DNA of 58,488 nucleotides, taken from assembly GCF_006345805.1 (NCBI RefSeq), contig NW_021834378.1, positions 1 to 58,488 on the forward strand, read 5' to 3'. The stretch comes from Octopus sinensis (lineage: Eukaryota). The notes beneath the pieces are model-generated. The model was given only the letters and a program-made list of their open reading frames with translations. It made no database searches and was not told the DNA's origin. Shown piece by piece: positions 15,594-42,257 of this stretch (positions within the stretch are counted from its first letter, which is position 1; each line of letters starts with the position of its first letter). A program made the position numbers and the translations under genes.

Positions 15594-15723
15594 CGAGCTG
15601 GCAGAAACGTTAGCGCCCCGGGCGAAATGCTTAGCGGTATTTCGTCTGCGTTACGTTGTGAGTTCAAATTCCGCCGAGGTCGATTTTGCCTTTCATCCTT
15701 TCGGGGTCAATTAAATAAGTACC
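15594..15723 (+). mobile_element. SINE family 2, 5' part, interrupted by the giant element; continues 41015-41485 as 3 tandem bodies
   Basis: Sequence continuity across the TSD; period of about 182 bp downstream. Confidence 0.85.
15716..15723 (+). repeat. Left target-site duplication TAAGTACC
   Basis: Directly precedes the GGATC terminus; identical to 41015-41022. Confidence 0.9.
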
Positions 15724-16140
15724 GGATCTTTTCCATTTGAAGGCTTGATTTCAACACAATTTCTAGTTAACTAAACTCTTTAAAACTTCGTATACTGGTA
15801 GAATATGTGAAAATAAAACATTTTTGGATCTTTTCCGTTTGAAGGCCAGATTTCAACACAATTTCTAGTTAACTAAACACTTTAAAACTTCGTATACTGG
15901 TAGAATGTGTCAAAATAAAAATTTTTTGGATCTTTTCCGTTTGAAGGCCAGATTTCAAAACAATTTCTAGTTAACTAAACTCTTTAAAGCTTTGTATACT
16001 GGTAGAAGGTGTCAAAATAAAACATTTTGGATCTTTTCCGTTTGAAGGCCAGATTTCAACACAATTTCTAGTTAACTAAACACTTTAACACTTTAAAACT
16101 TCGTATACTGGTAGAATGTGTCAAAATAAAACATTTTTTT
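15724..16140 (+). repeat. 102-bp tandem repeat x4 (outer terminus multimer)
   Basis: GGATC recurs at 15724, 15826, 15928 and 16029; mirrored at about 40598-41014. Confidence 0.85.
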
Positions 16141-16231
16141 TCTCTTGGCTTTCTTGAGAAAACTGTAATTTGTTTGTTTAACGTAGTTTAATTTTTCGAA
16201 TTTTAACCAATCCTATGCTCTCTTTTGAGCT

Positions 16232-16495
16232 AAAATCATTTGCTGCGTCTAAAACAGAGACAACATTCTGTAACTAACCCTAAACCTCCCCCATAACCCT
16301 AACCCAAACCCTAAGTTTATTTTTCTTAATTGTTAAATTAATTTAATAGTTACGCGTGTAAAAAAACTAAAGCAAAGGAATTACATTAATTTAACAATTA
16401 AGAAAAAAAATGTTAGGGTTATGGTTGGGGTTAGGGGGGAGGTTTAGGGTTAGTTACAGGATGTTGTCTCAGTTTTAGACGCAGCAAATGATTTT
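16232..16495. repeat. Hairpin core of E1 with degenerate TTAGGG/CCCTAA motifs (mirror copy 40250-40513)
   Basis: AAAATCATTTGCTGCGTCTAAAAC...TAACCCTAAACCTCCCCC pairs with GGGGGAGGTTTAGGGTTA...GTTTTAGACGCAGCAAATGATTTT. Confidence 0.8.
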
Positions 16496-16561
16496 TGTTG
16501 AATGGAGGTAATCGATTGGTTAAAATTGCCGAAATGCTCGGATTTTCAGACGAAATATCTT

Positions 16562-17886
16562 ACAAACTATAGAATTTTCTCAATAAAGCCAATGATGTTT
16601 TATAAACACATTCTACCAGTATACGAAGTTTAAAAAGGTTTAGTTACGTGGAAATTATTTTAAAAAGCTGCCGTTCAAACCGAAAAGATCCTAGAATTTT
16701 CTCAATAAAGCCAAGAGTAAAAGAGGTTTTATAAAAACATTCTACCAGTATACGAAGTTTAAAAGTGTTTAGTTACGTGGAAATTATTTTTAAAAACTGC
16801 CGTTCAAGCAGAAAAGATCCTAGAATTTTCTCAATAAAACCAAGAGAAAATGATGTTTTATAAACACATTCTACCAGTATACGAAGTTTAAAAGTGTTTA
16901 GTTACGTGCAAATTATTTTAAAAAACTGCCGTTCAAACAGAAAAGATCCTAGAATTTTCTCAATAAAACCAAGAGAAAATGATGTTTTATAAACACATTC
17001 TACCAGTATACGAAGTTTAAAATTGTTTAGTTACGTGGAAATTATTTTAAAAAACTGCCGTTCAAACAGTAAAGATCCTAGAATTTTCTCAATAAAACCA
17101 AGAGAAAATGATGTTTTATAAACACATTCTACCAGTATACGAAGTTTAAAAGTGTCTAGTTACGTGGAAATTATTTTTAAAAACTGCTTTTCAAACAGAA
17201 AAGATCCTAGAATTTTCTCAATAAGACCAAGAGAAAATGATGTTTTATAAACACATTCTACCAGTATACGAAGTTTAAAAGTGTCTAGTTACGTGGAAAT
17301 TATTTTTAAAAACTGCCTTTCAAACAGAAAAGTTCCTAGAATCTTCTCAATAAACCAAGAGAAAATGATGTTTTATAAACACATTCTACCAGTATACGAA
17401 GTTTAAAAGTCTTTAGTTACGTTGAAATTATTTTAAAAAACTGCCGTTCAAACAGAAAAGATTCTAGAATTTTCTCAATAAAACCAAGAGAAAATGATGT
17501 TTTATAAACACATTCTACCAGTATACAAAGTTTAAAAGTGTTTAGTTACGTGGACATTATTTTAAAAGACTGCCGTTCAAACTGATAATGTCCTAGAATT
17601 TTCTCAATAAAACTAAGAGAAAAGTTCCTAGAATCTTCTCAATAAAACCAAGAGAAAATGATGTTTTATAAACACATTCTACCAGTATACGAAGTTTAAA
17701 AGTGTCTAGTTACGTGGAAATTATTTTAAAAATCTGCCGTTCAAACAGAAAAGATCCTAGAATATTCTCAATAAAACCAAGAGAAAATGATGTTTTATAA
17801 ATACATTCTACCAGTATACGAAGTTTAAAATTGTTTAGTTACGTGGAAATTATTTTAAAAAACCGCCGTTCAAACAGAAAAGATCC
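16562..17886 (+). repeat. 129-bp tandem array, about 10 units
   Basis: GATCCTAGAA recurs at 16816 and 16945 (period 129). Each unit carries the terminal motif ACTGCCGTTCAAACAGAAAAGATCC. Confidence 0.9.
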
Positions 17887-18305
17887 AAATCATCTCCTGT
17901 TGTTCAGGACGAATGGCGGCCCGAATCGCAGGATGAACCTCAGTGCTTACCTCCATGGAGTGCCACAGGACTCATGGCAGCGGAGGATGAGTACTGCGAA
18001 AATCCGATAACAGACACTAAAATACAAGTAAAATAAACGAGGAGCAAATCAACTAATTCAGGTATGCTTCTTCTGAAACAGTGGAGGCGTCAGCATCATG
18101 ATCGTAAGATTGTGGTTTCGATTCCTGGACCGGGCGACGCGTTGTGTTCTTGAGCAAATCACTTAATTTCACGTTTCTCCAGTCCACCCAGCCGGCAAAA
18201 ATGAGTAACGCTGAGATGGACTGGCGTCCCATCCAGCTGGGGAACACATACGCCATTGAAACCGGAAAACTGGGCCCATGAGCCTGGCTAGGCTTTAAAA
18301 GGGTG

Positions 18306-19349
18306 TGTAGCAATAACCATTTTAGCCATTTTGAAATGTGGCCTGAATTGGCAATATGACGTAATGTCGTATTGCCGAAGAATTATCCTTTTCGTTCTTT
18401 TTTCCATTGGTTAATATAACTGCTCATATAAAGATTCTAAAAGTTTCGTAAATAATATTTGTCATGGATTTCGATTCTTTTTAGTCAAGTTGAGCAGTTA
18501 TAAAAACCCTGGATTTTGGGAAAAATTCCAGTGTTTGTTGGATGTCACTGACCTCCACGACACTCACTCTTTGAGACATCGGTAATTTTCATGCCATGTC
18601 TAGAGTTAATCACAAATCTATTTGCTAGAATTGAGAAATTAGTAATGAAATTATAGTCGTTCTTCTTCTTCACGACAAAGTTATCTTTCCTACTGTAAAT
18701 AATATAAAATGTTATATTTATTAATAAAACTAATTAAAGAAATGTTTCTCTTCACTTCAGTTTGCTATGAATATTAACGACATGTATGTTAAATATTTTC
18801 TTCGTGTCCTTTAAACCGCTAAAAGAAAACATAAATTAAGGATTACAGAAATGCATCCTTATCTATGCTCAGTTGAAAAACAAACGTGAAGAGAACATTT
18901 TCTTTAATTAGTTTTATTATATAAATATAACATTTTATATTATTTACAGTAGGAAAGATAACTTTGTCGCGAAGAAGAACGACTATAATTTCATTAAATA
19001 ATTTCTCAATTCTAGCTAATACATTAACCAACAAATCAAAATAGATTTGTGATTAACTCTAGACATGGCATGAAAATTCCCGATGTCTCAAAAGAGTGAG
19101 TGTCGTGGAGTTCAGTGACATCCAACAAACACTGAAATTTTTCCCAAAATCCAGGGTTTTTATAACTGCTCAACTTGACTAAAAAGAATCGAAATCCATG
19201 ACAATATTCTTTACGAAACTTTTAGAATCCTTATATGAGCAGTTATATTAACCAATGGGAAAAATGAAAATGATAATTTCGGCAATACGACATTACGTCA
19301 TATTGCCAATTCGGCCACATTTCAAAATGGCTAAAATGGTTTTGCTACA
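18306..19349. mobile_element. Foldback element with TGT..ACA ends and 4-bp TSD (GGTG), Ginger-like ends
   Basis: TGTAGCAATAACCATTTTAGCC...GGCTAAAATGGTTTTGCTACA, with GGTG on both sides and arms of about 450 bp. Confidence 0.7.
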
Positions 19350-19353
19350 GGTG

Positions 19354-19600
19354 CAATGAAGGCGCGTGGCTTAGTGTTTAGGGCGTCAGCATCATGATCG
19401 TAAAGGTTGTGGTTTCGATTCCTTGAACGGGCGACGCGTTGTATTCTTGAGCAAAACACTTCCTTTCCCGTTGGCTCCAGTCCACTCACTGGCAAAAATG
19501 AGTAACACTGCGATGGACTGGCGGCCCGTCCACTGGGTAACACATGCGCCATAGAAACCGAGAAAACGGGCCCATGAGCCTGGCTAGGCTTTAAAAAAAA
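19354..19600 (+). mobile_element. SINE family 3 (also 18075-18305, 15400-15590, and mirror copies 25530-25770, 26105-26330, 29620-29840, 30180-30430, 35110-35356, 36645-36870)
   Basis: GGCGCGTGGCTTAGTG A box, GGTTTCGATTCC B box, TTCTTGAGCAA..CAC core-like segment. Confidence 0.7.
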
Positions 19601-20361
19601 GGGCGTATTTGTTTATTTTTATTCTTCTCAAACACTGCGTTTAAATGACAGACTTGATTGATGACATTTAACAGATATCCAGCAACTGGCAATAAAACGA
19701 GAAAATTACCATTTCTGTGATCCAGAAAGTGGTGGCATTGCTGAAAGCAGACGCCAATAATGGGAACCATATCTGTAATTTCAGCCTAAAATTCGGCTAA
19801 TTGCGAAGCGAAAAAATTAACTCAAGTGTTAGCACAGATATTAACGCTTGTCATTATTGTTCTGGTCGGTGATTCGTCGCAGATATTCACCATCCTGAAT
19901 AGATCTCCTTACAAAAATTCTACTCATGTCATATGACAGAGGGAGTGGTTGAGGAACATGGCATGGCTGGGACCTAAACCAGTTTAGAAGAAACAAAAGC
20001 ATTCGAATGAGTCGCTCACCGATAATTGGCGACTGTCCTCACAAAGTCGCTTTCAGTCACGTCTTTCGGAGTTGGATTTGCCGCAATGTGCAATATCTTC
20101 TTGGTTGCCAGAGTAAAAGTCCACCTATGAGAACCGTTTATATATGACCAATCTACCATAGGTCACACTTCATCAGTAAATTTGATTAAATTAAGCTAGT
20201 TTATCATTTAACAACACAGAAACGATGCATCGTCTAAAAGATGAATTAGGGTAAATGTTTTTAAATTTTCACCTAATTTCTGAATTGATACTGCTTGCGG
20301 TTTGAGTTCTGGCTGCTCTCTCTAGTGGACGAATGGCCTGTTAAGGCCACTCCTAAATTGT

Positions 20362-20394
<33 letters not shown>

Positions 20395-20471
20395 TATATA
20401 TAGATGAGTGTATTTTACCTTGTTAACAATTAACACGGATAAATGAATGAATATATATATATATATATATA

Positions 20472-20521
<50 letters not shown>

Positions 20522-20797
20522 TGTATGTATATATATATATATAATGTATGTATATAATATATTATATGTATAGTATATTATATGTATGTATGTATGTATG
20601 TATATATCTATATATATATATTATAATATATATAATATATTATACACATATATATTTATCTTTTACTGTTTCAGTCACTAGACCACGGCCATACATGCAT
20701 ATATATATAGATATGTTGTATGTATGTATGTATGTATTATGCTTGTATATAATCATTCGATTAAAACATATACACATATACATGTATATATATACAC

Positions 20798-20836
<39 letters not shown>

Positions 20837-20837
20837 G

Positions 20838-20951
<114 letters not shown>

Positions 20952-21044
20952 CAACAAAATTTATTACAATCATGAACATAATTATAACATAATGGAGGTG
21001 CGGTGAAGCAATGTTGCTAAGCTCTAATTAGAAATATGTTCATA

Positions 21045-21625
21045 ATGGTAATATAAACTGAAGTTGTCTGTTTATGGCAGTTTGGTAGCCTTCAACTAAT
21101 TTTTTGGTGTATTTCCACCAGAAAAATGGTCACTTAAAGAGAATATCAATCTACATAATGCAAAAGTTTTATTTTCAAAAATTCCAATTCTAAAGGGTCG
21201 AAACAAACCCGAGCAATGCCGGGCGATACTGCTAGTATATATATAAAGCTGAAGTTGTTTGTGTAAGGCCGGTTTGATAGCCTTCAACTAACACTATCTC
21301 CTCCGAGACCCTGCGGCACAAGTTGACCAAAATTGAGAGTATGATAGAAGAAAGCTTGCTCTTCCTACCGTAGAAGAAAAAATTCAAATTGGACCCGTGT
21401 TAACACCAAAAATTATTTATATCAAAAAGGTGCTTTTTTCTATGAAAATCTCTATTTTTTTTTACGGTTTTTTTAACTGCTGTTCGCCATTTTTTGTGGT
21501 ATTTCAACCAGAAAATTTTCACTTAAGAGAATATCAAGCTACATAATGCAAAATTTTTATTTTCAAAACTTCCAATTCTAAAGAGTCGAAAAGAAAAGAA
21601 ACCCGAGCAATGCCGGGCGATACTT
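21045..21625 (+). mobile_element. Two tandem Helitron copies of a second subfamily (single copy in the mirror arm, about 33040-33425)
   Basis: The first ends AAACCCGAGCAATGCCGGGCGATACTGCTAG|T at 21235. The second starts ATATATAAAGCTGAAGTTG and loses CTAG at about 21625. Confidence 0.65.
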
Positions 21626-23286
21626 TTGAAATGTATTTCTTGCAACATCGTGTTAAAAAAATCATACAAAAATTCTCCTCTCTCTCGGTTCACTAAGCAG
21701 AAGCATTATTTAAGAGTTGCCTACGCAAGCAAAGTGATTCACGACATATATATATCTGCTGTCTTTTGTTATATTTGTTCGTTTCTGGGTTACTCGATAC
21801 AAAATGGAAAAGCTATTCAGAAGTGACATTTCAGATTTTCCAAAATGCATTTTTTTTTTTCACTGAAATAAAACCTGTCTACACTCCCTCCCTAGAAACA
21901 AATAAAGAAGATGATACGCTTGTATATAATTCATAAGAAAGACATTGTTGTGTACGGAATCAAACACTGCACCTAAAACCTGACCACCAATTATGATTCT
22001 GTGAACCATGGTTGCGTTGCAGCAATGCATGCACCTGGCAATGTAAAAAAATTCTTTTGAAATATATTTTTTGCACTATCCTTAAAAAACATCATACAAC
22101 AAACTCTCTTTCCTCGGGTTCACAAAGCAGAAACTTATTTAAGAGTTTTTTACAATAGGCAAAAGTGACTCACGACATATATAAGCTTCTCGAAATCCGG
22201 TTTCAGAATTGTCCAAATGCATTTTATTTTACACCGCGGATTTTAAATGTCTACACCTCCAACGAAACACATTACAAGTGGATCTTAAACAGATAGATAA
22301 TTCACAATAAAGACTAAATCGTGTCAAAATTTTACGCCAGCCGTTAAACTGCACTATGTTACTGTCCGTCGTTAAGAAATGCCAGCCATGGTGAACCCTA
22401 CTATCTTCAGATTCTATCCTTTCTGGAAAATGCAAAATACTGCATAACTAAAAGGATTTTTTATACATCAAAAACTCCAGCTGGGCCAAATTTCACTTTT
22501 CCTCTTTGTGAAGATGGAATAAGGCCAGCCATTTAGGAGAAAAAGTGTAGTCCGTACCAATGACTTGAGTCATTTTGTTGATTTATTATTGTATTGACAT
22601 TTAAAAGGTGAACATAAATAATCGGAAGAAATGCCAGTAAGCAGTTGGTCCGGCTTGCGAACCATTCTGTCACTTTGCCGCCTTTGGTTTCAACGATGGC
22701 ATAGGGTTATAATTTTAAGTAAAGGGAGTTAATTGATTACATCGACCCCCAGTGTTTAACTGGTACATATTTTAATCGACACAGCCTCTTTTCAACAGTG
22801 CTGATCAATTCTATGTCCCTGGGCTCTGACACAGTGACATCCTACCTCACGCAGAAATATTCCTCATGTCCCCATTTTCCGCAGTAGTAGCTTTAGAGTC
22901 TGTAAATAGAGAACGAATGGGTAAGAGAAAGCCTTGGAAATGAACGGTTCTCATTGGGACTTTTACTCTGGCAACCAAGAAGATATTGCACATTGTGGCA
23001 ATCCAACTCCGAAAAAGTATAGAGTATGTATGTATATATATATATATATATATATATAAATATAACATTTAGGAATGGCCTTAACAGGCCATTCGTCCAC
23101 CAGAAAGAGCAGCCAGAAACTCACACACCGCCAAGTAGTGCAATTCGGAAATAAGGGAAAATTTAAAACGTTTACCCTAATTCATCTTTTATACGAATGC
23201 ATCGTTTCAGTATTAATTGATAATATATATATATATATATATATAAATATATATATATATTATATAATATATATATATATATATAT

Positions 23287-23517
23287 TAAATTAGGATAAA
23301 ACCACTATTAGGCAAATCAAACAATGAAAAACATAAGCCAATACATAAAAGTAATTAATTTATATTATTTTAAATATATATCAAAAGTATTAAAAGTCTA
23401 ACTAAACTTTTAAAACTTTTGATATATATTTAAAATATATAAATTAATTATTTATGTATTGGCTTCTTATGTTTTTCATAGTTTGATTTGCCTAATAGTG
23501 GTTTTTATCTTAATTTA
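23287..23517. repeat. AT-rich hairpin with arms of about 105 bp (mirror 31332-31567; half copy 2860-2915)
   Basis: ATAAAACCACTATTAGGCAAATCAAAC pairs with GTTTGATTTGCCTAATAGTGGTTTTTAT. Confidence 0.7.
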
Positions 23518-23831
23518 ATATAATATAATATTTTACTATAAAATTGGATTTAATCCTAAATCCTGATTTTTCCCTGTAAGTTTGATTTTTCCCTAATATT
23601 TATCATATTATAATATATATATATATATATATAATATATATATATATATATTATATAACAATAAGATTCTTTGCAACATAAGGGTCAAGCAACTTGTTGC
23701 AAAGACCCTTATTGTTATAATTATATAAACTTTTACCGAATATGGTCCTTTCCATATCGGAGTGCTACTAGGTGAAATTTGTTAATTTTATTAAATTAAT
23801 TTATTTCACCCTTTATCTGTATATATAATAT

Positions 23832-24940
23832 AGCTTGGGCAAAGTTCAGAGAGCTCTTATACCTCTGCTGGTGACAAAGGCCTCTCGCACAGAGTGAAGG
23901 CAGACTGTATGATGCGTGTGTACGAACAGCCATGCTACATGGCAGTGAAACATGGGCCGTGACTGCTGAGGATATGCGTAAACTCGCTAGAAATGAAGCC
24001 AGTATGCTCCGATGATGTGTAATGCCGTTACTCACACTCGGCAGAGTGTAAGTACCTTGAGAGAAAGCTGGACCTAAGAAGCATCAGTTGTGGTGTGGCA
24101 AGAGAGACGTTTGCGCTGGTATGGTCCATGTGGCGAGAATGGATGAAGATAGTTGTGTGAAAAAGTGCCACACCCTAGCGGTTGAGGGAACCTGTGGAAG
24201 AGGCAGACCCAGGAAAACCTGGGACGAGGTGGTGAAGCACGACCTTCGAACTTTAGGTCTCACTGAGGAAATGACTAGAGACCGAGACCTCTGAAGTGTG
24301 CTGTGCGCGAGAAGACCCGGCAGGACATGAGTCCATAACCCGTTGCCTTCTACATGGGATGGAGCCCAGCCTACGTATGCATACCTTCCCTTCTTGGACA
24401 CAAAACTCTATTTGTGAAGACGTGATGAGGCAAGTGAGGATCAGAATCGAAATCGATCAATGGAAATTGCTGATTGCTACCAGTGCGGCCTGTGGCATGT
24501 CAAAACTCTGCTTGTGAAGACCCGTTGAGGCAAGTGACGATCAGAATCGAATCGATCAATGGAAATCGATCAATGGAAATTGCAGATGTGTTACCAGTGC
24601 CGGTGGCATGTAAGAGAACTTTCCGTTTCGCGACCGTTGCCAGCACCGCCCCGTTTCGTGTCCGTTGGCAGCCTCGCCTGGCCCTCGTGCCGGTGGCACT
24701 AAAAGCAACCATCCGTCGTCGTGGCCGTTTGCCAGCTCTGTCTGGCACCAGTGCGGGTGCACGTAAAAAGCACCCACTACACTCACGGAGTGGTTGGCGT
24801 TAGGAAAGGCATCCCAGCCGTAGAAACACTGCCAGATTTGACTGGGCCTGATGAAGCCTTCTGGCTTCACAGACCCCAGTAGAACCGTCCAACCCATGCT
24901 AGCATGGAAAACGGACGCTAAACGATGTTGATGATGATGA
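23832..24940 (+). mobile_element. 5'-truncated RTE-type LINE (end of ORF2, 3' UTR, (ATG)n tail)
   Basis: Frameshifted RLYDACVRTAMLHGSETWAVTAEDMRKLARNEASMLR ... HVARMDEDSCVKKC..VEGTCGRGRPRKTW; LHGSETW and GRPRKTW are RTE hallmarks. Confidence 0.8.
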
Positions 24941-25775
24941 TATATATATATATATATAATATATATATATTATATATTATATAAACGTTTCTCATAGGGG
25001 ACTTTTACTCTGGCACCAAGAAGATATTGCACATTGCGGCAATCCAACTCCCGAAAGAACGTGACTGAAAGCGACTTTTGTGAGGACAGTCGCCAATTAT
25101 CGGTGAGCGACTCATTCGAATGCTTTTGTTCTCTTCTAAACTGGTTAGGTCCCAGCCATGCCATGTTCCTCAACCACTCCCTCTGTCATATGACATGAGT
25201 AGAATTTTTTGTAAGGAGATCTATTCAGGATGGTGAATATCTGCGAATCACCGACCAGAACAATAATGACAAGCGTTAATATCGTGCTACACAACTTGAG
25301 TTAAATTTTTTCGCTTCGCAATTAGCCGAATTTAGGCTGAAATTTACAGATATGGTTCCCATTATTGGCGTCTGCTTTCAGCAATGCCACCACTTTCTGG
25401 ATCACAGAAATGGTAATTTTCTCGTTTTATTGCCAGTTGCTGGATATCTGTTAATATGTCATCAATCAAGTCTTCATTTAAACGCAGTGTTTGAGAAGAA
25501 TAACAATAATAAATATGCGCCCTTTTTTTTTAAAGCCTAGCCAGGCTCAGGAGCCCTTTTCCCTCGGTTTCTATGCGCATGTGTTACCCAGCTGGACGGG
25601 CCCGCCAGTCCATCGCAGTGTTACTCATTTTTGCCAGCTGAGTGGACTGGAGCACGTGAAAGGAATGTTTTGCTCAAGAATACAACGCGTCGCCCGTTCC
25701 AGGAATCGAAACCACAACCTTTACGATCATGATGCTGACGCCATAAACACTAAGCCACGCGCCTTCATTTGCACC

Positions 25776-26100
25776 TGTAGCAATAACCATTTTAGCCATT
25801 TAAATGTGGCGTGAATTGGCAATATGACGTAATGTCTTTGCCGAAGATTATCATTTTCATTTTTCCCATTGGGTATATAACTGCTCATATAAAGATTCTA
25901 AAAGTTTCGTAAAGAATATTTGTCATGGATTTCGATTCTTTTTAGTCAAATTTCTTTACGAAACTTTTAGAATCTTTATATGAGCAGTTATATTAACCAA
26001 TGGAAAAAAAACGAAAAGGATAATTCTTCGGCAATACGACATTACGTCATATTGCCAATTCACGCCACATTTCAAAATGGCTAAAATGGTTATTGCTACA
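25776..26100. mobile_element. Same foldback element, centre-deleted state (325 bp)
   Basis: Same termini and CACC flanks; only about 160 bp of each arm remain. Confidence 0.7.
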
Positions 26101-26503
26101 CACCCTTTTAAGCCTAGCCAGGCTCATGAGCCCAGTTTTCCCGTTCAATGGCGTATGTGTTCCCCAGCTGGATGGGACGCCAGTCCATCTAAGCGTTACT
26201 CATTTTTGCCGGCTGGTGGACTGGAGAAACGTGAAATTAAGTGATTTGCTCAAGAACACAACGCGTCGCCCGGTCCAGGAATCGAAACCCACAATCTTAC
26301 GATCATGATGCTGACGCCTCCACTGTTTCAGAAGAAGGCATACCTGAATTAGTTGATTCTCCTCGTTTGCTCCTGTCTGTTATCGGATTTTTCGCAGTAC
26401 TCATCCTCCGCTGCCATGAGTCCTGTGGCACTCCATGGAGGTAAGCACTGAGGTTCATCTTGCGATTCGGTCCGCCATTCGTCCTGAACACAGGAGATGA
26501 TTT

Positions 26504-29842: not shown

Positions 29843-30174
29843 TGTAGCAATAACCATTTTAGCCATTTTGAAATGTGGCGTGAATTGGCAATATGACGTA
29901 ATGTCGTATTGCCGAAGAATTATCCTTTTCGTTTTTTTTCCATTGGTTAATATAACTGCTCATATAAAGATTCTAAAAGTTTCGTAAAGAATATTTGACT
30001 AAAAAGAATCGAAATCCATGACAAATATTCTTTACGAAACTTTTAGAATCCTTATATGAGAAGTTATATTAACCAATGGGAAAAATGAAAATGATAATTC
30101 TTCGGCAATACGACATTACGTCATATTGCCAATTCACGCCACATTTCAAAATGGCTAAAATGGTTATTGCTACA
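29843..30174. mobile_element. Same foldback element, centre-deleted state (332 bp)
   Basis: Mirror of 25776-26100, with GGTG flanks. Confidence 0.7.
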
Positions 30175-30965
30175 GGTGCAAATGAAGGCGCGTGGCTTAG
30201 TGTTTAGGGCGTCAGCATCATGATCGTAAAGGTTGTGGTTTCGATTCCTGGAACGGGCGACGCGTTGTATTCTTGAGCAAAACACTTCCTTTCACGTTGC
30301 TCCAGTCCACTCAGCTGGCAAAAATGAGTAACACTGCGATGGACTGGCGGCCCGTCCAGCTGGGTAACACATGCGCCATAGAAACCGAGAAAACGGGCCC
30401 ATGAGCCTGGCTAGGCTTTAAAAAAAAAAGGGCGTATTTATTTATTTTTATTCTTCTCAAACACTGCGTTTAAATGACAGACTTGATTGATGACATATTA
30501 ACAGATATCCAGCAACTGGCAATAAAAGGAGAAAATTACCATTTCTGTGATCCAGAAAGTGGTGGCATTGCTGAAAGCAGACGCCAATAATGGGAACCAT
30601 ATCTGTAAATTTCAGCCTAAAATTCGGCTAATTGCGAAGCGAAAAAATTTAACTCAAGTGTTAGCACAGATATTAACGCTTGTCATTATTGTTCTGGTCG
30701 GTGATTCGCAGATATTCACCATCCTGAATAGATCTCCTTACAAAAAATTCTACTCATGTCATATGACAGAGGGAGTGGTTGAGGAAAATGGCATGGCTGG
30801 GACCTAAACCAGTTTAGAAGAAACAAAAGCATTCGAATGAGTCGCTCACCGATAATTGGCGACTGTCCTCACAAAAGTCGCTTTCAGTCACGTCTTTCGG
30901 AGTTGGATTGCCGCAATGTGCAATATCTTCTTGGTTGCCAGAGTAAAAGTCCACCTATGAGAACC

Positions 30966-31055
<90 letters not shown>

Positions 31056-31574
31056 AGATAAAGGGTGAAATATAATTAATTTAATAAAATTAACTAATTT
31101 CACCTAGTAGCACTTCGATATGGAAAAGGACCATATTCGGTAAAAGTTTATATAATTATAACAATAAGGGTCTTTGCAACAAGTTGCTTGACCCTTATTG
31201 TTGCAAAGAATCTTATTGTTATATATATATATATATATATATGATAAAATATTAGGGAATAAATCCAAACTTACAGGGAAAAATCAGATTTAGGATTAAA
31301 TCCAATTTTATAGTAAAATATTATATTATATTAAATTAGAGATAAAACCACTATTAGGCAAATCAAACAATGAAAAACATAAGAAGCCAATACATAAAAT
31401 TAATTAATTTATATTATTTAAAATATATATCAAAAGTTTTAAAAGTTTAGTTAGACTTTTAATACTTTTGATATATATTTAAAATAATATAAATTAATTA
31501 CTTTTATGTATTGGCTTATGTTTTTCATTGTTTGATTTGCCTAATAGTGGTTTTATCTCTAATTTAATATAATA

Positions 31575-31620
<46 letters not shown>

Positions 31621-33522
31621 TATATATACATACTCTATACTTTTTCGGAGTTGGATTGCCACAATGTGCAATATCTTCTTGGTTGCCAGAGTAAAAGTCC
31701 ACCAATGAGAACCGTTCATTTCCAAGGCTTTCTCTTCCCATTCGTTCTCTATTTACAGACTCTAAAGCTACTACTGCGGAAAATGGGGACATTGAGGAAT
31801 ATTTCTGCGTGAGGTAGGATGTCACTGTGTCAGAGCCCAGGGACATAGAATTGATCAGCACTGTTGAAAAGGAGGCTGTGTCGATAAAATATGTACCAGT
31901 TAAACACTGGGGTCGATGTAATCAATTAACTCCCTTTACTTAAAATTATAACCCTATGCCATCATTTGAAACCAAAGGCGGCAAAGTGACAGAATGGTTC
32001 GCAAGCCGGACAAACTGCTTACTGGCATTTCTTCCGATTATTTATGTTCACCCTTTAAATGTCAATACAATAATAAATCAACAAAATGACTCAAAGTCAT
32101 TGGTACGGACTACACTTTTCTCCTAAACTGGCTGGCCTTATTCCATCTTCACAAAGAGGAAAAGTGAAATTTGGCCCAGCTGGAGTGTTTTTGTATGTAT
32201 AAAAAATCCTTTTAGTTATGCAGTATTTTGCATTTTCCCAGAAAGGATAGAATCTGAGGATAGTAGGGTCACCATGGCTGGCATTTCTTAACGACGGACA
32301 GTAACATAGTGGCAGTTTAACGGCTGGCGTAAAATTTTGACACGATTTAGTCTTTATTATGAATTATCTGTCTGTTTAATATCCTCTTTGTAATGTGTTT
32401 CGATGGAGGTGTAGACATTTTAAAATCTCGGTGTAAATAAAATGCATTTTGGAAATTCTGAAACCGGACCTTCGAGGAGCTTATATATATGTCGTGAGTC
32501 ACTTTTGCCTATAGTAAACAACTCTTAAATAAGTTTCTGCTTTGTGAACCGAGGAAAGAGAGTTTTTTGTATGATTGTTTTTTTAAGGATTTTGCAAAAA
32601 ATATATTTCAAAAGCATTTTTTTTACATTGCCAGGTGCATGCATTGCTGCAACGCAACCATGGTTCACAGAATCATAATTGGTGGTCAGGTTTTAGGTGC
32701 AGTTGTATTGATTCCGTACACAACAATGTCTTTCTTATGAATTATATACAAGCGTATCCTCTTCTTTATTTGTTTCTAAGGGAGTGTAGACAGGTTTTAT
32801 TTCAGTGAAAAAAAAAATGCATTTTGGAAAATCTGAAATGTCACTACTGAAACGCATTTCCTTTTTGTATCGAGTAACCCAGAAACGAACAAATATAACA
32901 AAAGACAGCAGATATATATACGTCGTGGATCACTTTTGCTTGCGTAGGCAACTCTTAAATAATGCTTCTGCTTAGTGAACCGAGAGAGGAGAATTTTTGT
33001 ATGATTTTTTTAACGATGTTGCAAGAAATACATTTCAAAAGTATCGCCCGGCATTGCTCGGGTTTCTTTTCTTTTCGACTCTTTAGAATTGGAATTTTTG
33101 AAAATAAATATTTTGCATTATGTAGCTTGATATTCTCTTTAAGTGAACATTTTTCTGGTTGAAATACACCAAAAAATGGCGACACAGCAGTTAAAAAACC
33201 GTAAAAAATAGGGATTTTCATAGAAAAAAGCACCTTTTTGATATAAATAATTTTTGGTGTTAACACGGTCCAATTTGAATTTTTTCTTCTACGGAAGGAA
33301 GAGCAAGCCTTCTTCTATCATACTCTTAATTTTGGTCAACTTGCGCAGCAGGGTCCCGGAGGAGATAGTGTTAGTTGAAGGCTACCAAACCTGCCATACA
33401 CAGACAACTTCAGTTTTATATTACCATTATGAACATATTTCTAATTAGAGCTTAGCAACATTGCTTCACCGCACCTCAATTATGTTTATAATTATGTTCA
33501 TGATTGTAATAAATTTTGTATG

Positions 33523-33580
<58 letters not shown>

Positions 33581-33599
33581 GATATATATATATATATAT

Positions 33600-33644
<45 letters not shown>

Positions 33645-33712
33645 ATATGTGTATATATATATATATAGATATATATATATATATATAATATATATTATAT
33701 ATATATATATAT

Positions 33713-33744
<32 letters not shown>

Positions 33745-33964
33745 TATGTGTATATATATACATGTATATGTGTATATGTTTTAATCGAATGATTCAATAT
33801 ACAAGCATATATACATACATACATACATACATATCTATATATATATGCATGTATGGCCGTGGTCTAGTGACTGAAACAAGTAAAAGATAAATATATATGT
33901 GTATATATATATACGTATATATATATATATATATATATAGATATATATATATATACATACATAC

Positions 33965-34063
<99 letters not shown>

Positions 34064-34093
34064 TATATTATATATATATATATATATACACAC

Positions 34094-34165
<72 letters not shown>

Positions 34166-34236
34166 TACATACATATATATATATATATAATATATATTAT
34201 ATATATATATAATATATATACATATATATATATTAT

Positions 34237-34267
<31 letters not shown>

Positions 34268-34312
34268 TCATTCATTTATCCGTGTTAATTGTTAACAAGG
34301 TAAAATACACTC

Positions 34313-34343
<31 letters not shown>

Positions 34344-35360
34344 ACAATTTAGGAGTGGCCTTAACAGGCCATTCGTCCACTAGAGAGAGAGCATCCAGAA
34401 CTCAAACTGCAAGCAGTATCAATTCAGAAATTAGGTGAAAATTTAAAAACATTTACCCTAATTCATCTTTTAGACGATGCATCGTTTCTGTGTTGTTAAA
34501 TGATAAACTAGCTTAATTAAATTAAATTTACTGATGAAGTGTGACCTATGGTAGATTGGTCATATATAAACGGTTCTCATAGGTGGACTTTTACTCTGGC
34601 AACCAAGAAGATATTGCACATTGCGGCAATCCAACTCCGAAAGACGTGACTGAAAGCGACTTTTGTGAGGACAGTCGCCAATTATCGGTGAGCGACTCAT
34701 TCGAATGCTTTTGTTTCTTCTAAACTGGTTTAGGTCCCAGCCATGCCATGTTCCTCAACCACTCCCTCTGTCATATGACATGAGTAGAATTTTTTGTAAG
34801 GAGATCTATTCAGGATGGTGAATATCTGCGAATCACCGACCAGAACAATAATGACAAGCGTTAATATCTGTGCTAACACTTGAGTTAAATTTTTTCGCTT
34901 CGCAATTAGCCGAATTTTAGGCTGAAATTTACAGATATGGTTCCCATTATTGGCGTCTGCTTTCAGCAATGCCACCACTTTCTGGATCACAGAAATGGTA
35001 ATTTTCTCGTTTTATTGCCAGTTGCTGGATATCTGTTAATATGTCATCAATCAAGTCTGTCATTTAAACGCAGTGTTTGAGAAGAATAAAAATAAACAAA
35101 TACGCCCTTTTTTTTAAAGCCTAGCCAGGCTCATGGGCCCGTTTTCTCGGTTTCTATGGCGCATGTGTTACCCAGCTGGACGGGCCGCCAGTCCATCGCA
35201 GTGTTACTCATTTTTGCCAGCTGAGTGGACTGGAGCAACGTGAAAGGAAGTGTTTTGCTCAAGAATACAACGCGTCGCCCGTTCCAGGAATCGAAACCAC
35301 AACCTTTACGATCATGATGCTGACGCCCTAAACACTAAGCCACGCGCCTTCATTTGCACC

Positions 35361-36640
35361 TGTAGCAATAACCATTTTAGCCATTTTGAAATGTGCCGTG
35401 AATTGGCAATATGACGTAATGTCGTATTGCCGAAGAATTATCATTTTCGTTTTTTCCATTGGTTAATATAATTGCTCATATAAAGATTCTAAAAGTTTCG
35501 TAAAGAATATTTGTCATGGTTTTCGATTCTTTTTAGTCAAGTTGAGCAATTATAAAAACCCTGGATTTTGGGGAAAATATCAGTGTTTGTTGGATGTCAC
35601 TGAACTCCACGACACTCACTCTTTTGAGACATCGGTAATTTTCATGCCATGTCTAGAGTTAATCACAAATCTATTTTGATTTGTTGGTTAATGTATTAGC
35701 TAGAATTGAGAAATTAGTTAATGAAATTATAGTCGTTCTTCTTCGCGACAAAGTTATCTTTCCTACTGTAAATAATATAAAATGTTATATTTATATAATA
35801 AAACTAATTAAAAGAAAATGTTTCTCTTCACGTTTGTTTTTCAACTGAGCATAAATAAGGATGCATTTCTGTAATCCTTAATTTATGTTTTTTTATAGCG
35901 GTTTAAAGGACACGAAGAAAATATTCAACATACATGTCGTCAATATTCATAGCGTTTCATGCGTATATGTCTATATGACGATATAACTGTAGTTAGGGTT
36001 TTAGGTATAATGATAACACTTTAGTATAAGTGATGTTGAATCATTATATTCTCCCTTACTCAGAGAAAAGCCAAATAAAATAATAAAAACTAAGAGAAAG
36101 CTTAAGGTTTAAAACAAAAACCGCCAACTGAACATAAATTAAGGATTACAGAAATGCATCCTTATTTATGCTCAGTTGGAAAACAAACGTGAAGAGAAAC
36201 ATTTTCTTTTAATTAGTTTTATTATATAAATATAACATTTTATATTATTTACAGTAGGAAAGATAACTTTGTCGTGAAGAAGAACGACTATAATTTCATT
36301 TACTAATTTCTCAATTCTAGCAAATAGATTTGTGATTAACTCTAGACATGGCATGAAAATTACCGATGTCTCAAAAGAGTGAGTGTCGTGGAGTTCAGTG
36401 ACATCCAACAAACACTGATATTTTTCCCAAAATCCAGGGTTTTTATAACTGCTCAACTTGACTAAAAAGAATCGAAATCCATGGCAAATATTCTTTACGA
36501 AACTTTTAGAATCTTTATATGAGCAGTTATATTAACCAATGGAAAAAAGAACGAAAAGGATAATTCTTCGGCAATACGACATTACGTCATATTGCCAATT
36601 CACGCCACATTTCAAAATGGCTAAAATGGTTATTGCTACA
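35361..36640. mobile_element. Same foldback element, longest state (1280 bp)
   Basis: Flanked CACC/CACC; arms about 530 bp, spacer about 240 bp. Confidence 0.7.
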
Positions 36641-37059
36641 CACCCTTTTAAAGCCTAGCCAGGCTCATGGGCCCAGTTTTCCGGTTTCAATGGCGTATGT
36701 GTTCCCCAGCTGGATGGGACGCCAGTCCATCTCAGCGTTACTCATTTTTGCCAGCTGGGTGGACTGGAGAAACGTGAAATTAAGTGATTTGCTCAAGAAC
36801 ACAACGCGTCGCCCGGTCCAGGAATCGAAACCACAATCTTACGATCATGATGCTGACGCCTCCACTGTTTCAGAAGAAGCATACCTGAATTAGTTGATTT
36901 GCTCCTCGTTTATTTTACTTGTATTTTAGTGTCTGTTATCGGATTTTCGCAGTACTCATCCTCCGCTGCCATGAGTCCTGTGGCACTCCATGGAGGTAAG
37001 CACTGAGGTTCATCCTGCGATTCGGGCCGCCATTCGTCCTGAACAACAGGAGATGATTT

Positions 37060-40000
37060 GGATCTTTTCTGTTTGAACGGCGGTTTTTTAAAATAATTTC
37101 CACGTAACTAAACACTTTTAAACTTCGTATACTGGTAGAATGTGTTTATAAGATATCATTTTCTCTTGGTTTTATTGAGAAAATTCTAGAATCTTTTCTG
37201 TTTGAACGGCAGTTTTTTAAAATAATTTCCACGTAACTAAACACTTTTAAACTTCGTATACTGGTAGAATGTATTTATAAAACATCACTTTCTCTTGGTT
37301 TTATTGAGAAAATTCTAGGATCTTTTCTGTTTGAACGGCAGATTTTTAAAATAATTTCCACGTAACTAGACACTTTTAAACTTCGTATACTGGTAGAATG
37401 TGTTTATAAAACATCATTTTCTCTTGGTTTTATTGAGAAGATTCTAGGAACTTTTCTCTTAGTTTTATTGAGAAAATTCTAGGACATTATCTGTTTGAAC
37501 GGCAGTTTTTTAAAATAATGTCCACGTAACTAAACACTTTTAAACTTCGTATACTGGTAGAATGTGTTTATAAAACATCATTTTCTCTTGGTTTTATTGA
37601 GAAAATTCTAGAATCTTTTCTGTTTGAACGGCAGTTTTTTAAAATAATTTCCACGTAACTAAACCCTTTTAAACTTCGTATACTGGTAGAATGTGTTTAT
37701 AAAACATCATTTTCTCTTGGTTTTATTGAGAAGATTCTAGGAACTTTTCTGTTTGAAAGGCAGTTTTAAAAATAATTTCCACGTAACTAGACACTTTTAA
37801 ACTTCGTATACTGGTAGAAGTTGTTTATAAACATCATTTTCTCTTGGTCTTATTGAGAAAATTCTAGGATCTTTTCTGTTTGAAAAGCAGTTTTTAAAAA
37901 TAATTTCTACGTAACTAGACACTTTTAAACTTCGTATACTGGTAGAATGTGTTTATAAAACATCATTTTCTCTTGGTTTTATTGAGAAAATTCTAGGATC
38001 TTTTCTGTTTGAACGGCAGTTTTTTAAAATAATTTCCACGTAACTAAACACTTTTAAACTTCGTATACTGGTAGAATGTGTTTATAAAACATCATTTTCT
38101 CTTGGTTTTATTGAGAAGATTCTAGGAACTTTTCTGTTTGAAAGGCAGTTTTTAAAAATAATTTCCACGTAACTAGACACTTTTAAACTTCGTATACTGG
38201 TAGAATGTGTTTATAAAACATCATTTTCTCTTGGTCTTATTGAGAAAATTCTAGGATCTTTTCTGTTTGAAAAGCAGTTTTTAAAAATAATTTCCACGTA
38301 ACTAGACACTTTTAAACTTCGTATACTGGTAGAATGTGTTTATAAAACATCATTTTCTCTTGGTTTTATTGAGAAAATTCTAGGATCTTTTCTGTTTGAA
38401 CGGCAGTTTTTAAAAATAATTTCCACGTAACTAAACACTTTTAAACTTCGTATACTGGTAGAATGTGTTTATAAAACATCATTGTCTCTTGGTTTTATTG
38501 AGAAAATTCTAGGATCTTTTCTGTTTGAACGGCAGTTTTTTAAAATAATTTCCACGTAACTAAACACTTTTAAACTTCGTATACTGGTAGAATGTGTTTA
38601 TAAAACATTTTCTCTTAGTTTTATTGAGAAAATTCTAGGACATTATCTGTTTGAACGGCAGTTTTTTAAAGTAATTTCCACGTGACTAAACACTTTTAAA
38701 CTTCGTATACTGGTAGAATGTGTTTATAAAACATCATTTTCTATTGGTTTTATTGAGAAAATTCTAGAATCTATTCTGTTTCAACGGCAGTTTTTTAAAA
38801 TAATTTCCACGTAACTAAACACTTTTAAACTTCGTATACTGGTAGAATGTGTTTAAAAAACATCATTTTCTATTGGTTTTATTGAGAAGATCCTAGGAAC
38901 TTTTCTGTTTGAAAGGCAGTTTTTAAAAATAATTTCCACGTAACTAGACACTTTAAGCTTCGTATACTGGTAGAATGTGTTTATAAAATATCATTTTCTC
39001 TTGGTTTTATTGGGAACATTCTAGGATCTTTTCTGTTTGAACGGCAGTTTTTTAAAATAATTTCCACGTAACTAAACACTTTTAAACTTCGTATACTGGT
39101 AGAATGTGTTTATAAAACATCATTTTCTCTTGGTTTTATTGAGAAAATTCTAGGATCTTTTCTGTTTGAACGGCAGTTTTTTAAAATAATTTCCACGTAA
39201 CTAAACAATTTTAAACTTCGCATACTGGTAGAATGTGTTTATAAAACATCATTTTCTCTTGGTTTTATTGAGAAGATTCTAGGATCTTTTCTGTTTGAAA
39301 GGCAGTTTTTAAAAATAATTTCCACGTAACTAGACACTTTTAAACTTCGTATACTGGTAGAATGTGTTTATAAAACATCATTTTCTCTTGGTTTTATTGG
39401 GGAAATTCTAGGATCTTTTCTGTTTGAACGGCAGTTTTTTAAAATAATTTCCACGTAACTAAACACTTTTAAACTTCGTATACTGGTAAAATGTGTTTAT
39501 AAAACATCATTTTCTCTTGGTTTTATTGAGAAAATTCTAGGAATTTTTCTGTTTGAACGGCAGTTTTTTAAAATAATTTCCACGTAACTAGACACTTTTA
39601 AACTTCGTGTACTGGTAGAATGTGTTTATAAAACATCATTTTCTCTTGGTTTTATTGAGAAAATTCTAGGATCTTTTCTGTTTGAACGGCAGTTTTTTAA
39701 AATAATTTCCACGTAACTAAACACTTTTAAACTTCGTATACTGGTAGAATGTGTTTATAAAACATCATTTTCTCTTGGTTTTATTGAGAAAATTCTAGGA
39801 TCTTTTCTGTTTGAACGGCAGTTTTTTAAAATAATTTCCACGTAACTAAACACTTTTAAACTTCGTATACTGGTAGAATGTGTTATAAAAACATCATTTT
39901 CTCTTGGTTTTATTGAGAAATTCTAGGATCTTTTCTGTTTGAACGGCAGTTTTTAAAATAATTTCCACGTAACTAAACACTTTTAAACTTCGTGTACTGG

Positions 40001-40165
40001 TAGAATGTGTTTATAAAACCTCTTTTAATCTTGGCTTTATTGAAAAAATTCTAGGATCTTTTCTGTTTGAACGGCAGCTTTTTAAAATAATTTCCACGTA
40101 ACTAAACCTTTTTAAACTTCGTATACTGGTAGAATGTGTTTATAAAACATCATTGGTTTTATTGA
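37060..40165 (-). repeat. 129-bp tandem array, about 24 units
   Basis: Reverse complement of the 16562-17886 unit. Confidence 0.9.
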
Positions 40166-41014
40166 GAAAGTTCTATATTTTGTAAGATATTTCGTCTGAA
40201 AATCCGAGCATTTCGGCAATTTTAACCAATCGATTACCTCCATTCAACTAAAATCATTTGCTGCGTCGAAAACTGAGACATCATCCTGTAACTAACCCTA
40301 AACCTCCCCCCTAACCCCAACCATTAACGTAACATTTTTTTTCTTAATTGTTAAATTAATGTAATTCCATTGCTTTAGTTTTTTTACACGCGTAACAATT
40401 AAATTAATTTAACAATTAAGAAAAATAAACTTAGGGTTTGGGTTAGGGTCATGGGGGAGGTTTAGGGTTAGTTACAGAATGTTGTCTCTGTTTTAGACGC
40501 AGCAAATTATTTTAGCTCAAAAGAGAGCATAGGATTGGTTAAAATTCGAAAAATTAAACTACGTTAAACAAACAAATTACAGTTTTCTCAAGAAAGCCAA
40601 GAGAAAAAAAATGTTTTATTTTCACACATTCTACCAGTATACGAAGTTTTAAAGAGTTTAGTTAACTAGAAATTGTTTTGAAATCTGGCCTTCAAACGGA
40701 AAAGATTCAAAAATGTTTTATTTTGACACATTCTACCAGTATACGAAGTTTTAAAGAGTTTAGTTAACTAGAAATTGTGTTGAAATCTGGCCTTCAAACG
40801 GAAAAGATTCAAAAATGTTTTATTTTGACACATTCTACCAGTATACGAAATTTTAAAGAGTTTAGTTAACTAGAAATTGTGTTGAAATCTGGCCTTCAAA
40901 TGGAAAAGATCCAAAAATGTTTTATTTTGACACATTCTACCAGTATACGAAGTTTTAAAGAGTTTCGTTAACTAGAAATTGTGTTGAAATCTGGCCTTCA
41001 AATGGAAAAGATCC
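37060..41014 (-). mobile_element. Right component element E2 (inverted copy of E1, about 24x129-bp units)
   Basis: Reverse complement of E1 with a longer 129-bp array. Joined to the same flank (GATGATTT|GGATC) as E1 (GATCC|AAATCATC). Confidence 0.75.
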
Positions 41015-41022
41015 TAAGTACC
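41015..41022 (+). repeat. Right target-site duplication TAAGTACC
   Basis: Directly follows the GATCC terminus; the SINE body resumes (AGTTACGCACTGGGGTCG). Confidence 0.9.
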
Positions 41023-42009: not shown

Positions 42010-42191
42010 CGTGTATGTATATATATATATATATATTATATATATATATAATATATATATATATATTATATATATATATATATACATATATATATACATA
42101 CATACACACACCCATATATATATATATATATTATATACATACATATATATATATACATATATATATACACACATACACACACACACACACC

Positions 42192-42257
<66 letters not shown>

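Follow-up and report, generated by a model that had tools for sequence, protein, structure and literature searches.

A 25.3-kb palindromic insertion in Octopus sinensis, probably a composite transposon moved by the outer ends of two non-autonomous elements

The window analysed here is the whole of contig NW_021834378.1 (58,488 bp; C10849 below), an unplaced sequence of the Octopus sinensis assembly (2.72 Gb in 13,516 sequences). Between positions 15724 and 41014 it carries an insert of 25,291 bp that begins and ends with two facing copies, E1 and E2, of an amplified miniature inverted-repeat transposable element (MITE), encloses ~19 kb of cargo arranged in mirror image, and has the octamer TAAGTACC on both sides. 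Judged from its sequence, this 25.3-kb insert is probably a composite (macro)transposon that was moved by the outer ends of two non-autonomous elements. The contig gave no Rfam match, no Pfam-recognisable open reading frame (ORF) and no recognisable gene; it is rich in (AT)n tracts and interspersed repeats, and with its AT-rich tracts and zero genes it is pure repeat. No ORF longer than 160 aa was found at 15-42 kb, and none of 13 ORFs taken from the cargo and elsewhere in the window matched Pfam. Thus, we infer that the 25.3-kb unit is non-autonomous and has captured no gene.

The insertion and its outer junctions

Read with arrays and microsatellites masked, the segments of the insert and its target follow one another as listed below (letters denote segments of the cargo, primes their mirror copies).

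15594-15723, plus strand: left part of the target repeat, ending in the left copy of TAAGTACC (15716-15723)
15724-16138, plus strand: outer arm of E1, four head-to-tail copies of the terminal 102 nt (Tandem Repeats Finder), the outermost beginning GGATCTTTTCC
16139-16590, plus strand: spacer of E1, the MITE internal region, 452 bp, 92-94 % identical to at least 40 genomic MITE copies
16591-17886, minus strand: inner arm of E1, in which the terminal 129 nt are repeated head-to-tail ~10 times; last bases ...GAAAAGATCC at 17886
17887-17894, plus strand: AAATCATC, half of the duplication kept from the earlier insertion of E and the first bases of donor flank a
17887-20361, plus strand: left outer cargo arm with a (17887-18461), p (18306-19349), c (19175-20138) and e (to 20361)
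20362-20951, no strand: (AT)n microsatellite (Tandem Repeats Finder), mirrored at 33519-34267
20955-23819, plus strand: d, mirrored at 33518-31055, containing common repeats
23820-24977, plus strand: u, 1.16 kb of ~50 % GC, confined to the left half; at the corresponding position the right half carries (TA)42 (30969-31053)
24978-26503, minus strand: c' and a', inner inverted copies with the short form of p, ending GATGATTT at 26496-26503
26504-29437, no strand: E3, two 129-bp arrays (11.5 and 11.4 units) fused head-to-head, plus, then the axis, then minus
29438-30968, plus strand: a and c, inner direct copies, beginning AAATCATC
30969-31053, no strand: (TA)n of the right half, opposite u
31055-33518, minus strand: d', mirror copy of d
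33519-34267, no strand: (AT)n, mirror of 20362-20951
34331-37059, minus strand: right outer cargo arm with e', c', p' (35361-36640) and a', which ends GATGATTT at 37052-37059
37060-41014, minus strand: E2, mirror of E1, with a 129-bp array of ~24 units (37060-40154), the spacer (40155-40606) and four 102-bp units (40607-41014), ending GGAAAAGATCC
41015-41487, plus strand: right part of the target repeat, comprising the right copy of TAAGTACC (41015-41022) and the remainder, 2.6 units of 182 bp

The left junction (15716-15740) reads ...gtcaattaaaTAAGTACC joined to GGATCTTTTCCATTTGA, that is, TAAGTACC followed by GGATCTTTTCC at 15716-15734, and the right junction (40998-41032) reads ...TCAAATGGAAAAGATCC joined to TAAGTACCagttacgcac, that is, GGAAAAGATCC followed by TAAGTACC at 41004-41022. 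The insert ends are inverted GGATCTTTTCC termini, and the chance of 8/8 identity at two fixed positions is 4^-8 = 1.5e-5. The interrupted target is a high-copy repeat of ~595 bp, built of ~183-bp units, with 11,917 first-look candidates genome-wide (first-look candidates, here and below, are search matches before scoring for identity). Three unbroken units in the window (12556, 41198 and 41380), with the core ...ttcggggtcaattaaaTAAGTACCagttacgcactgggg..., read tttcatcctttcggggtcaattaaaTAAGTACCagttacgcactggggtcgatgtaat, in which the sequence of the left flank passes through a single octamer into that of the right flank. The joined flanks align without gaps and colinearly across the junction to more than 40 other genomic copies, at 90-94 % identity. 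The 8-bp target-site duplication (TSD) and the rejoining flanks of the original prediction are thus borne out. The same prediction called the target a short interspersed nuclear element (SINE): one repeat copy is indeed interrupted, but a test for a tRNA-derived SINE, which should have a tRNA-related head with a cloverleaf or polymerase III promoter boxes, gave 0 genes with ARAGORN and 0 Rfam matches at gathering scores, and the label is unproven.

The right flank is a direct continuation of the left flank and not its mirror image. Because the flanks continue directly, with one duplicated octamer, neither an in-situ fold-back nor a read-through chimaera can have made the ends, and an in-situ fold-back of a simple insertion was rejected. 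That the whole feature is an artefact, either a chimaeric contig or a palindromic long read from a missed adapter, would accord with the unplaced state of the contig and with the palindromic chimaeras that occur in long-read data. Read-through would, however, mirror the flank too, instead of leaving a right flank that continues the left one with exactly one duplicated octamer, as in the more than 40 intact target copies, and the insert termini match the family termini to the base. We consider an artefact of this kind hardly credible.

Terminal elements, their MITE family and its candidate transposase

E1 and E2 are both complete (GGATC...GATCC) and are mirror images of each other, facing one another as had been predicted: their spacers (16139-16590 and 40606-40155) are 97 % identical when one is inverted and 80 % when both are read directly, the E1 spacer itself being ~75-80 % self-complementary. 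The arrays of 102-bp units (four copies) and 129-bp units (10 and 24 copies) lie in opposite orientation around the 452-bp spacer. Long inverted arms of tandem subrepeats and the absence of coding capacity place both in the foldback-type structural class.

At every unit boundary of both array types an internal base (nt 102 or nt 129) is joined to the terminal G of GGATC, which puts the start of the amplified segment at exactly nucleotide 1 of the element. This register points to an array origin linked to transposition rather than to random slippage; the arrays may have begun as element ends joined to, or inserted into, a sister terminal inverted repeat (TIR), and then grown by unequal exchange. 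Arrays in this register lie at 15724-16138, 16591-17886, 26504-29437 and 37060-41014. The possibility that the 129-bp unit is a TIR plus 29 bp of flank was rejected, as relatives at 14446 and 6795 show the 29 nt to be internal to the element.

Amplified arms and their units also occur elsewhere. Three loci with amplified-arm elements (L048-L050), taken as independent tests of the TSD, gave no clean TSD. Two of them (L049 and L050; C28:10164277-10164682 and C10157:14699-15309) hold the same amplified-arm insertion in a 180-bp tandem repeat, with four versus six units of 102 bp; thus, unit number changes after insertion. The 102-bp unit is the monomer of a satellite, 79-88 % identical to the window units, in arrays of up to ~12 kb (on C9699). 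Such arrays, mainly on small chromosomes and unplaced contigs, were seen at C9699:130654-142790, 148706-150655 and 187029-191410, C10405:17849-21323, C27 (7.298, 9.63, 10.68, 10.84 and 14.0 Mb), C29:14786037-14788836 and C20:17025142-17026611. Relatives of the 129-bp unit (79-85 % identical, with a slightly longer period) cluster on C30 (9.60-9.64, 13.41-13.56, 14.22-14.26 and 14.89 Mb) and occur at C27:16980378, C3314, C13072 and C12022:20932-21313. Copies of the 129-bp unit at 90 % identity or more are confined to C10849, C8325 and a 3-unit array on C12022.

A query spanning the E1 spacer (16100-16620) gave 2,025 first-look candidates genome-wide, and the 40 that were scored are 91-97 % identical. 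Besides the two copies in the window and two amplified ones on C8325, the scored copies are simple elements of 636-654 bp with termini GGATCTTTTCCTTTTGAACGGCAG... and a palindromic interior, in which the terminal ~100 nt form inverted repeats (the TIRs). Among 23 full-length copies, 13 have a perfect 8-bp TSD, 6 have one mismatch and 4 are degraded. The 13 perfect TSDs (from simple copies among L003-L030) have A at position 2 in 10 cases and T at position 7 in 8, a weak palindromic target preference of the form nAnnnnTn. The spacer tree is a star, its copies lying at a median distance of 3.6 %. As family termini and 8-bp TSDs are reproducible, the 25-kb unit shows, in its ends and its TSD, what is normal for copies of an abundant MITE family. 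Two independent relatives lie in the window outside the insert.

6795-7425, minus strand: family relative with the perfect 8-bp TSD AAATACCC
14446-15164, plus strand: family relative 560 bp to the left of the composite, with TSD CCTAAAAA/CCTAAAAG

The second of these has a 282-bp internal tandem duplication, and each holds a short telomere-like (CCCTAA)n tract. Elsewhere in the window, very long (AT)n or AT-rich tracts lie at 42014-42943, 55160-55540 and 56000-58000 (GC 6-17 % at 56-58 kb), and positions 1001-2000 combine low GC with a strong G skew.

hAT elements make 8-bp TSDs with an nTnnnnAn preference and have termini starting (C/T)A. Their TSD length fits, but the GG termini and the opposite target pattern seen here (A2 in 10/13, T7 in 8/13) speak against them as the source of the transposase. 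The Drosophila FB and MuDR-Foldback group proper makes 9-bp TSDs and has a Mutator-like (MULE-type) transposase partner; it is disfavoured by a TSD of 8 bp rather than 9 bp. In a count of matches, PF10551 had nine in the genome at E<=1e-8, none of them linked to the element.

Merlin elements are defined by terminal 5'-GG, TSDs of 8-9 bp and TIRs of 24-462 bp (PMC8101967). The present family has terminal GG at the composite ends (GGATCTTTTCC...GGAAAAGATCC) and in the 23 simple copies, TSDs of 8 bp (perfect in 13/23 and one-off in 6/23, in addition to TAAGTACC, AAATCATC and AAATACCC), and TIRs of ~100 nt in the simple MITE. PF12762 (DDE_Tnp_IS1595) has at least 150 matches over cut-off in the genome, many of them in open frames of ~300 aa. 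The Merlin assignment of the original prediction fits in its GG termini and 8-bp TSD but found no partner, in that the 14 transposase loci examined all lack this TIR; the family transposase is probably Merlin-like, but this is unproven. Comparison of those 14 loci with the MITE, the family-2 element and E1 gave no similarity. A weak match at L043 was discarded: on the query side it falls in a short telomere-like (CCCTAA) tract, and the corresponding part of L043 has no TIR relationship. In some Merlin copies (L034, L036 and L043) the TIRs are long, ~0.4-0.9 kb, and consist of tandem subrepeats of 150-316 bp. Merlin frames also occur as head-to-head inverted pairs 1.3-1.7 kb apart (C5:62817868/62819541, C18:28004992/28006665, C4:59165423/59166794 and C18:14979478/14981186).

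The older insertion site and the mirrored interior

Within the insert, the four junctions between a 129-bp array and segment a are all identical (GAAAAGATCC joined to AAATCATCTCCTGTTG), and the window has AAATCATC and flank a nowhere but at the inner ends of E1, E2 and E3. The claim that only the outermost ends share a TSD is therefore upheld, the inner ends all abutting AAATCATC (GATGATTT on the other strand). The first 200 bp of a (from the 17887-18085 region) were found only on C10849, in four copies, and on a second unplaced contig, C8325, in two.

C8325 carries the same amplified element, composed of eight or four 102-bp units, the spacer and three 129-bp units, with ...cgcaccgAAATCATC joined to GGATC at one end and GATCC joined to AAATCATCtcctgttg at the other. 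AAATCATC stands on both sides of it as an 8-bp TSD, with a sequence L to the left and a to the right of the older target. L occurs only on C8325 in the assembly (all 16 first-look candidates were scored). A paralogue on C23, at 75 % identity, runs colinearly from L-like to a-like sequence with no kilobase insert and a single octamer region; a close empty L-a site was not found in the assembly, this paralogue being the only one. Its restriction to two contigs and its position outside the TSD of E on C8325 identify a as donor flank, foreign to the family. Moreover, the outer ends adjoin TAAGTACC and the inner ends still adjoin AAATCATC and a, which indicates that the outer 102-nt ends were cut and re-integrated and the inner ends never moved. 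The two-sided AAATCATC on C8325, the inner ends that retain AAATCATC and a, the 2,000 or more candidate family copies with 8-bp TSDs and the insert-free C23 paralogue all support the prediction that a transposase acting in trans used the outer ends of two non-autonomous elements.

These findings bear on the alternative that the insert is one long foldback element, an ordinary large member of the family with a-c-d as its normal interior. Foldback elements are very variable in length and other loci have amplified 102-bp arms, both of which would suit it. Against this, a is restricted to two contigs and lies outside the TSD of E on C8325, the cargo beyond a is a patchwork of unrelated high-copy repeats and microsatellites, and a second 25-kb copy was not found in the assembly. 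We regard this alternative as very improbable.

The C8325 locus is itself complex. Its region 79329-91073 (L024, L031) contains tandem duplications of 79329-83324 / 83912-87500 (98-99.4 % identical, with eight versus four units of 102 bp) and of 87854-89493 / 89426-91073 (99 %), and a-p is followed by d' and e, whose order and orientation are not those of the window. The locus resembles a rearrangement hotspot and is not a simple donor. Such instability is in keeping with a second alternative, in which a simple family member would have made the TAAGTACC TSD, and ectopic recombination, break-induced replication or gene conversion with an L-E-a locus would then have replaced its interior by E-a...a'-E'. 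Thousands of homologous copies could serve as substrates, the region is prone to rearrangement (the tandem duplications and reordered cargo of C8325), and foldback-type elements of other animals, e.g., Galileo, reportedly cause ectopic recombination. However, the two ends of a simple insertion are a left and a right one, and here both outer ends are of the 102-nt type, with the spacer in the same polarity (97 % inverted versus 80 % direct). A single crossover would set a 129-nt-type end beside the right flank, and at least two coordinated events that preserve both termini and the TSD exactly would be needed. We consider this history improbable.

The prediction of mirror-image cargo arms between E1 and E2 is confirmed by four mirror pairs: 17887-18755 / 37059-36189 (98.3 % identical), 18764-20361 / 35953-34344 (97.2 %), 21241-23024 / 33421-31633 (94.9 %) and 24984-26503 / 30968-29438 (96.4 %). 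The palindrome has two levels: the order E a c ... c' a' E-arm makes a partial palindrome of each half, and the halves in turn mirror each other. At the a/c boundary lies a palindromic sub-element, p, with a 215-bp high-copy repeat x on each side (at least 40 genomic copies, ~94 % identical); p is in its long form in the outer arms (18306-19349 and 35361-36640) and in its short form in the inner arms (25776-26100 and 29843-30174).

The axis of the palindrome falls at 27966/27967, inside a 129-bp array, and reads CCACGTAACTAAAA-AC-TTTTAGTTACGTGG, compared with AACTAAACACTTTTAAAC in a normal unit. It coincides with a naturally occurring short inverted repeat (AACTAAA/TTTAGTT; TTT(T)A microhomology, spacer of 2 nt), a form typical of snap-back (fold-back) or fork-collapse junctions. 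Unit for unit, the two arms of E3 are mirror copies: aligned in register over 1,467 nt they show 13 substitutions and 31 small gaps, and substitution identity is 99 % in register versus 92-94 % out of register. E3 is thus two fused 129-bp arms and not an element with an insertion of its own. Its left end, at 26504, lacks the first terminal G (GATGATTT joined to GATCTTTT), through a 1-bp deletion or a consensus error.

Composite transposition and its known counterparts

Two complete inverted elements surround DNA that is foreign to the family, the outer ends share a TSD, and the inner ends keep the flank of an earlier insertion. These are the features that lead us to read the 25.3-kb insert as a probable composite transposon.

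Several observations weigh against this reading. C8325 carries E in tandem and not inverted, with a different cargo order, and the donor scar that would be expected, L joined to inverted L, was not found in the assembly. The older TSD is documented by one insertion event (in two tandem copies) and one distant paralogue. The spacer tree does not specifically group E1 and E2 with the C8325 copies; because the family is a star burst, the tree is uninformative on this tie. None of 14 Merlin loci, drawn from different score groups of the at least 150, has GGATCTTTTC termini or a GGATCTTTTCC-bounded transposase. The composite is present once, and no second 25-kb copy was found in the assembly. Inspection for an empty site, as proposed in the original prediction, was made in the assembly with 1.4 kb of joined flanks: it returned only other copies of the target repeat, so that intact targets were seen at the level of the family, and neither an empty nor a filled allelic site was found. 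Furthermore, C10849 is a repeat-only unplaced contig without a recognisable gene, and the mirror arms differ by 104 substitutions in 6,647 aligned positions (1.56 %), with a transition:transversion ratio of 40:64, and by 111 gap events, 94 of which are of 1 bp. The internal layout, i.e., the second-level palindrome, the unit counts and segment u, is unproven.

Much of the difference between the arms looks like residual long-read consensus noise, and with such a profile arm divergence is of little use either as a clock or as an argument against mis-assembly. The ~6 differences in 70 nt that had been noted between 22255-22323 and 32341-32410 are real in number (five substitutions and one indel), but the conclusion drawn from them, that the arms are not one molecule read twice, is weakly founded, the differences between arms being mostly 1-bp indels and transversion-biased; the stronger argument lies in the flanks, which continue each other directly. 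A partial mis-assembly must accordingly be considered, in which the junctions are real and the composite nature is kept, but the assembler walked twice through the opposed 129-bp arrays and so created E3 and the duplicated halves, the true element being a simpler E-cargo-E' of at most ~12 kb. The unplaced, repeat-only contig, the probable origin of the assembly from PacBio, Illumina and Hi-C data, the preponderance of 1-bp indels with a transition:transversion ratio of 0.6, and the ambiguous paths offered by 129-bp arrays in both orientations speak for it. On the other side are block differences (u, 1.16 kb, with no right-hand copy; arrays of 10 versus 24 units of 129 bp; p of 713 versus 944 bp), a divergence of ~10 % between inner and outer copies of a over the first 200 bp, and the type of the last unit beside a, 102-like (inner arms) or 129-like (outer arms). 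Together these indicate that the four arms are not the same sequence read twice, and we judge such a mis-assembly unlikely.

Under composite transposition, the history of the locus may be reconstructed in four steps. The starting point is a non-autonomous MITE of ~650 bp, with GG...CC termini, TIRs of ~100 bp and 8-bp TSDs, of which one member, E, has the terminal 102 nt at one end and 129 nt at the other amplified head-to-tail, in a foldback-type architecture. E then inserted at ...cgcaccgAAATCATCtcctgttg..., between L and a, and C8325 preserves this state. These first two steps are seen in the sequence itself. In the third step, an inverted duplication of E and its right-hand flank would have produced two facing copies of E with their 102-nt ends outward. 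Finally, a transposase supplied in trans may have paired the two outer 102-nt ends, cut them from L and integrated the whole 25.3-kb stretch into the repeat of 183-bp units, creating the new TSD TAAGTACC; the inner ends, left uncut, would still adjoin AAATCATC and flank a.

The inverted duplication could have arisen in two ways. By the first (sub-route A), a break in the inner 129-bp array would have been followed by fold-back priming and by copying back through a and E, with later excision from L...L'. By the second (sub-route B), once the donor had been replicated, the 102-nt end of E on one sister chromatid would have been paired with the same end on the other, and both ends integrated into the repeat, the sister arms being sealed at 27966/27967, where the fork may have stalled in the inverted 129-bp array. 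The two fit the data equally well. Sub-route B would explain the missing L-L' donor scar; that the transposition event itself made the mirror duplication is a possibility that we hold only tentatively.

It is proven that composite or alternative transposition can give rise to large duplications and inversions and can shuffle genes. To our knowledge, the evidence for composite transposition comes almost entirely from pairs of bacterial insertion sequences, Drosophila FB and maize Ac/Ds, and we know of no genetic demonstration of transposition-coupled re-replication or sister-chromatid rearrangements outside maize so far. In the bacterial composites Tn10 and Tn5, as here, two complete inverted elements bracket a cargo, and only their outer ends are used and share a TSD. 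Unlike Tn10 and Tn5, the octopus unit is built of eukaryotic non-autonomous elements, its transposase would have acted in trans, and its cargo is non-coding and palindromic. Drosophila FB and the giant FB-flanked "TE" likewise have long inverted repeats of head-to-tail subrepeats, variable in copy number and with little or no coding capacity, and likewise two elements mobilise large intervening host DNA as one unit. The present case differs in its TSD (8 bp and not 9 bp), in its unrelated sequences, in subrepeats that are the exact terminal 102 or 129 nt, in a mirror-duplicated cargo and in its host, a mollusc with a 2.72-Gb genome. The Tetris element of Drosophila virilis and the tandem-repeat MITEs of bivalves also have a terminal unit that is a satellite monomer; in contrast to these, array units start exactly at the terminal base here, and the amplified member joined a composite insertion.

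The likeness to Merlin elements (IS1016/IS1595-related) and their MITEs (PMC8101967) lies in features of the ends and the TSD, namely the GG termini, the TIR length and a duplication of 8 bp, and some Merlins of this genome have TIRs of subrepeats. In maize, macrotransposons, sister-chromatid transposition and composite insertions have been described for Ac/Ds (PMC4270019; PMC9910405), and the composite insertions that result from alternative transposition consist of transposon termini around duplicated donor DNA, with 8-bp TSDs (PMC4270019). The octopus locus resembles these in that the termini of two separate non-autonomous or fractured elements appear to have been used together, the ends flank duplicated donor flank, the new site has an 8-bp TSD, and two broken or re-replicated segments meet at a junction inside the unit. 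Sub-route B in particular would resemble the transposition-coupled re-replication and composite insertions of maize (PMC4270019). The maize events differ in that the 5' and 3' ends of different elements are used and the cargo comes from different sides, whereas here the same end is used twice and one side is mirrored. Ac/Ds are also hAT elements, in contrast to the GG termini and nAnnnnTn targets seen here, and the octopus insertion is a genomic fossil without a genetic pedigree.

If sub-route B is correct, the transposition-coupled re-replication and sister-chromatid rearrangements of maize would have a natural counterpart in an animal at this locus. If long reads validate it, its two same-polarity ends would provide defined substrates for tests of the transposase and of palindrome formation. 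Composite transposition at this locus would also mean that a high-copy MITE family in a large invertebrate genome is able to move tens of kilobases, and that one family links MITE bursts, the birth of satellites and the formation of palindromes. The new TSD, the complete end elements and the halves of the old TSD on the inner ends make the event reconstructable from sequence alone. Macrotransposition by paired ends of foldback-type non-autonomous elements is already known; beside the systems above, this locus appears to be a rare natural animal example with an unusually legible history.

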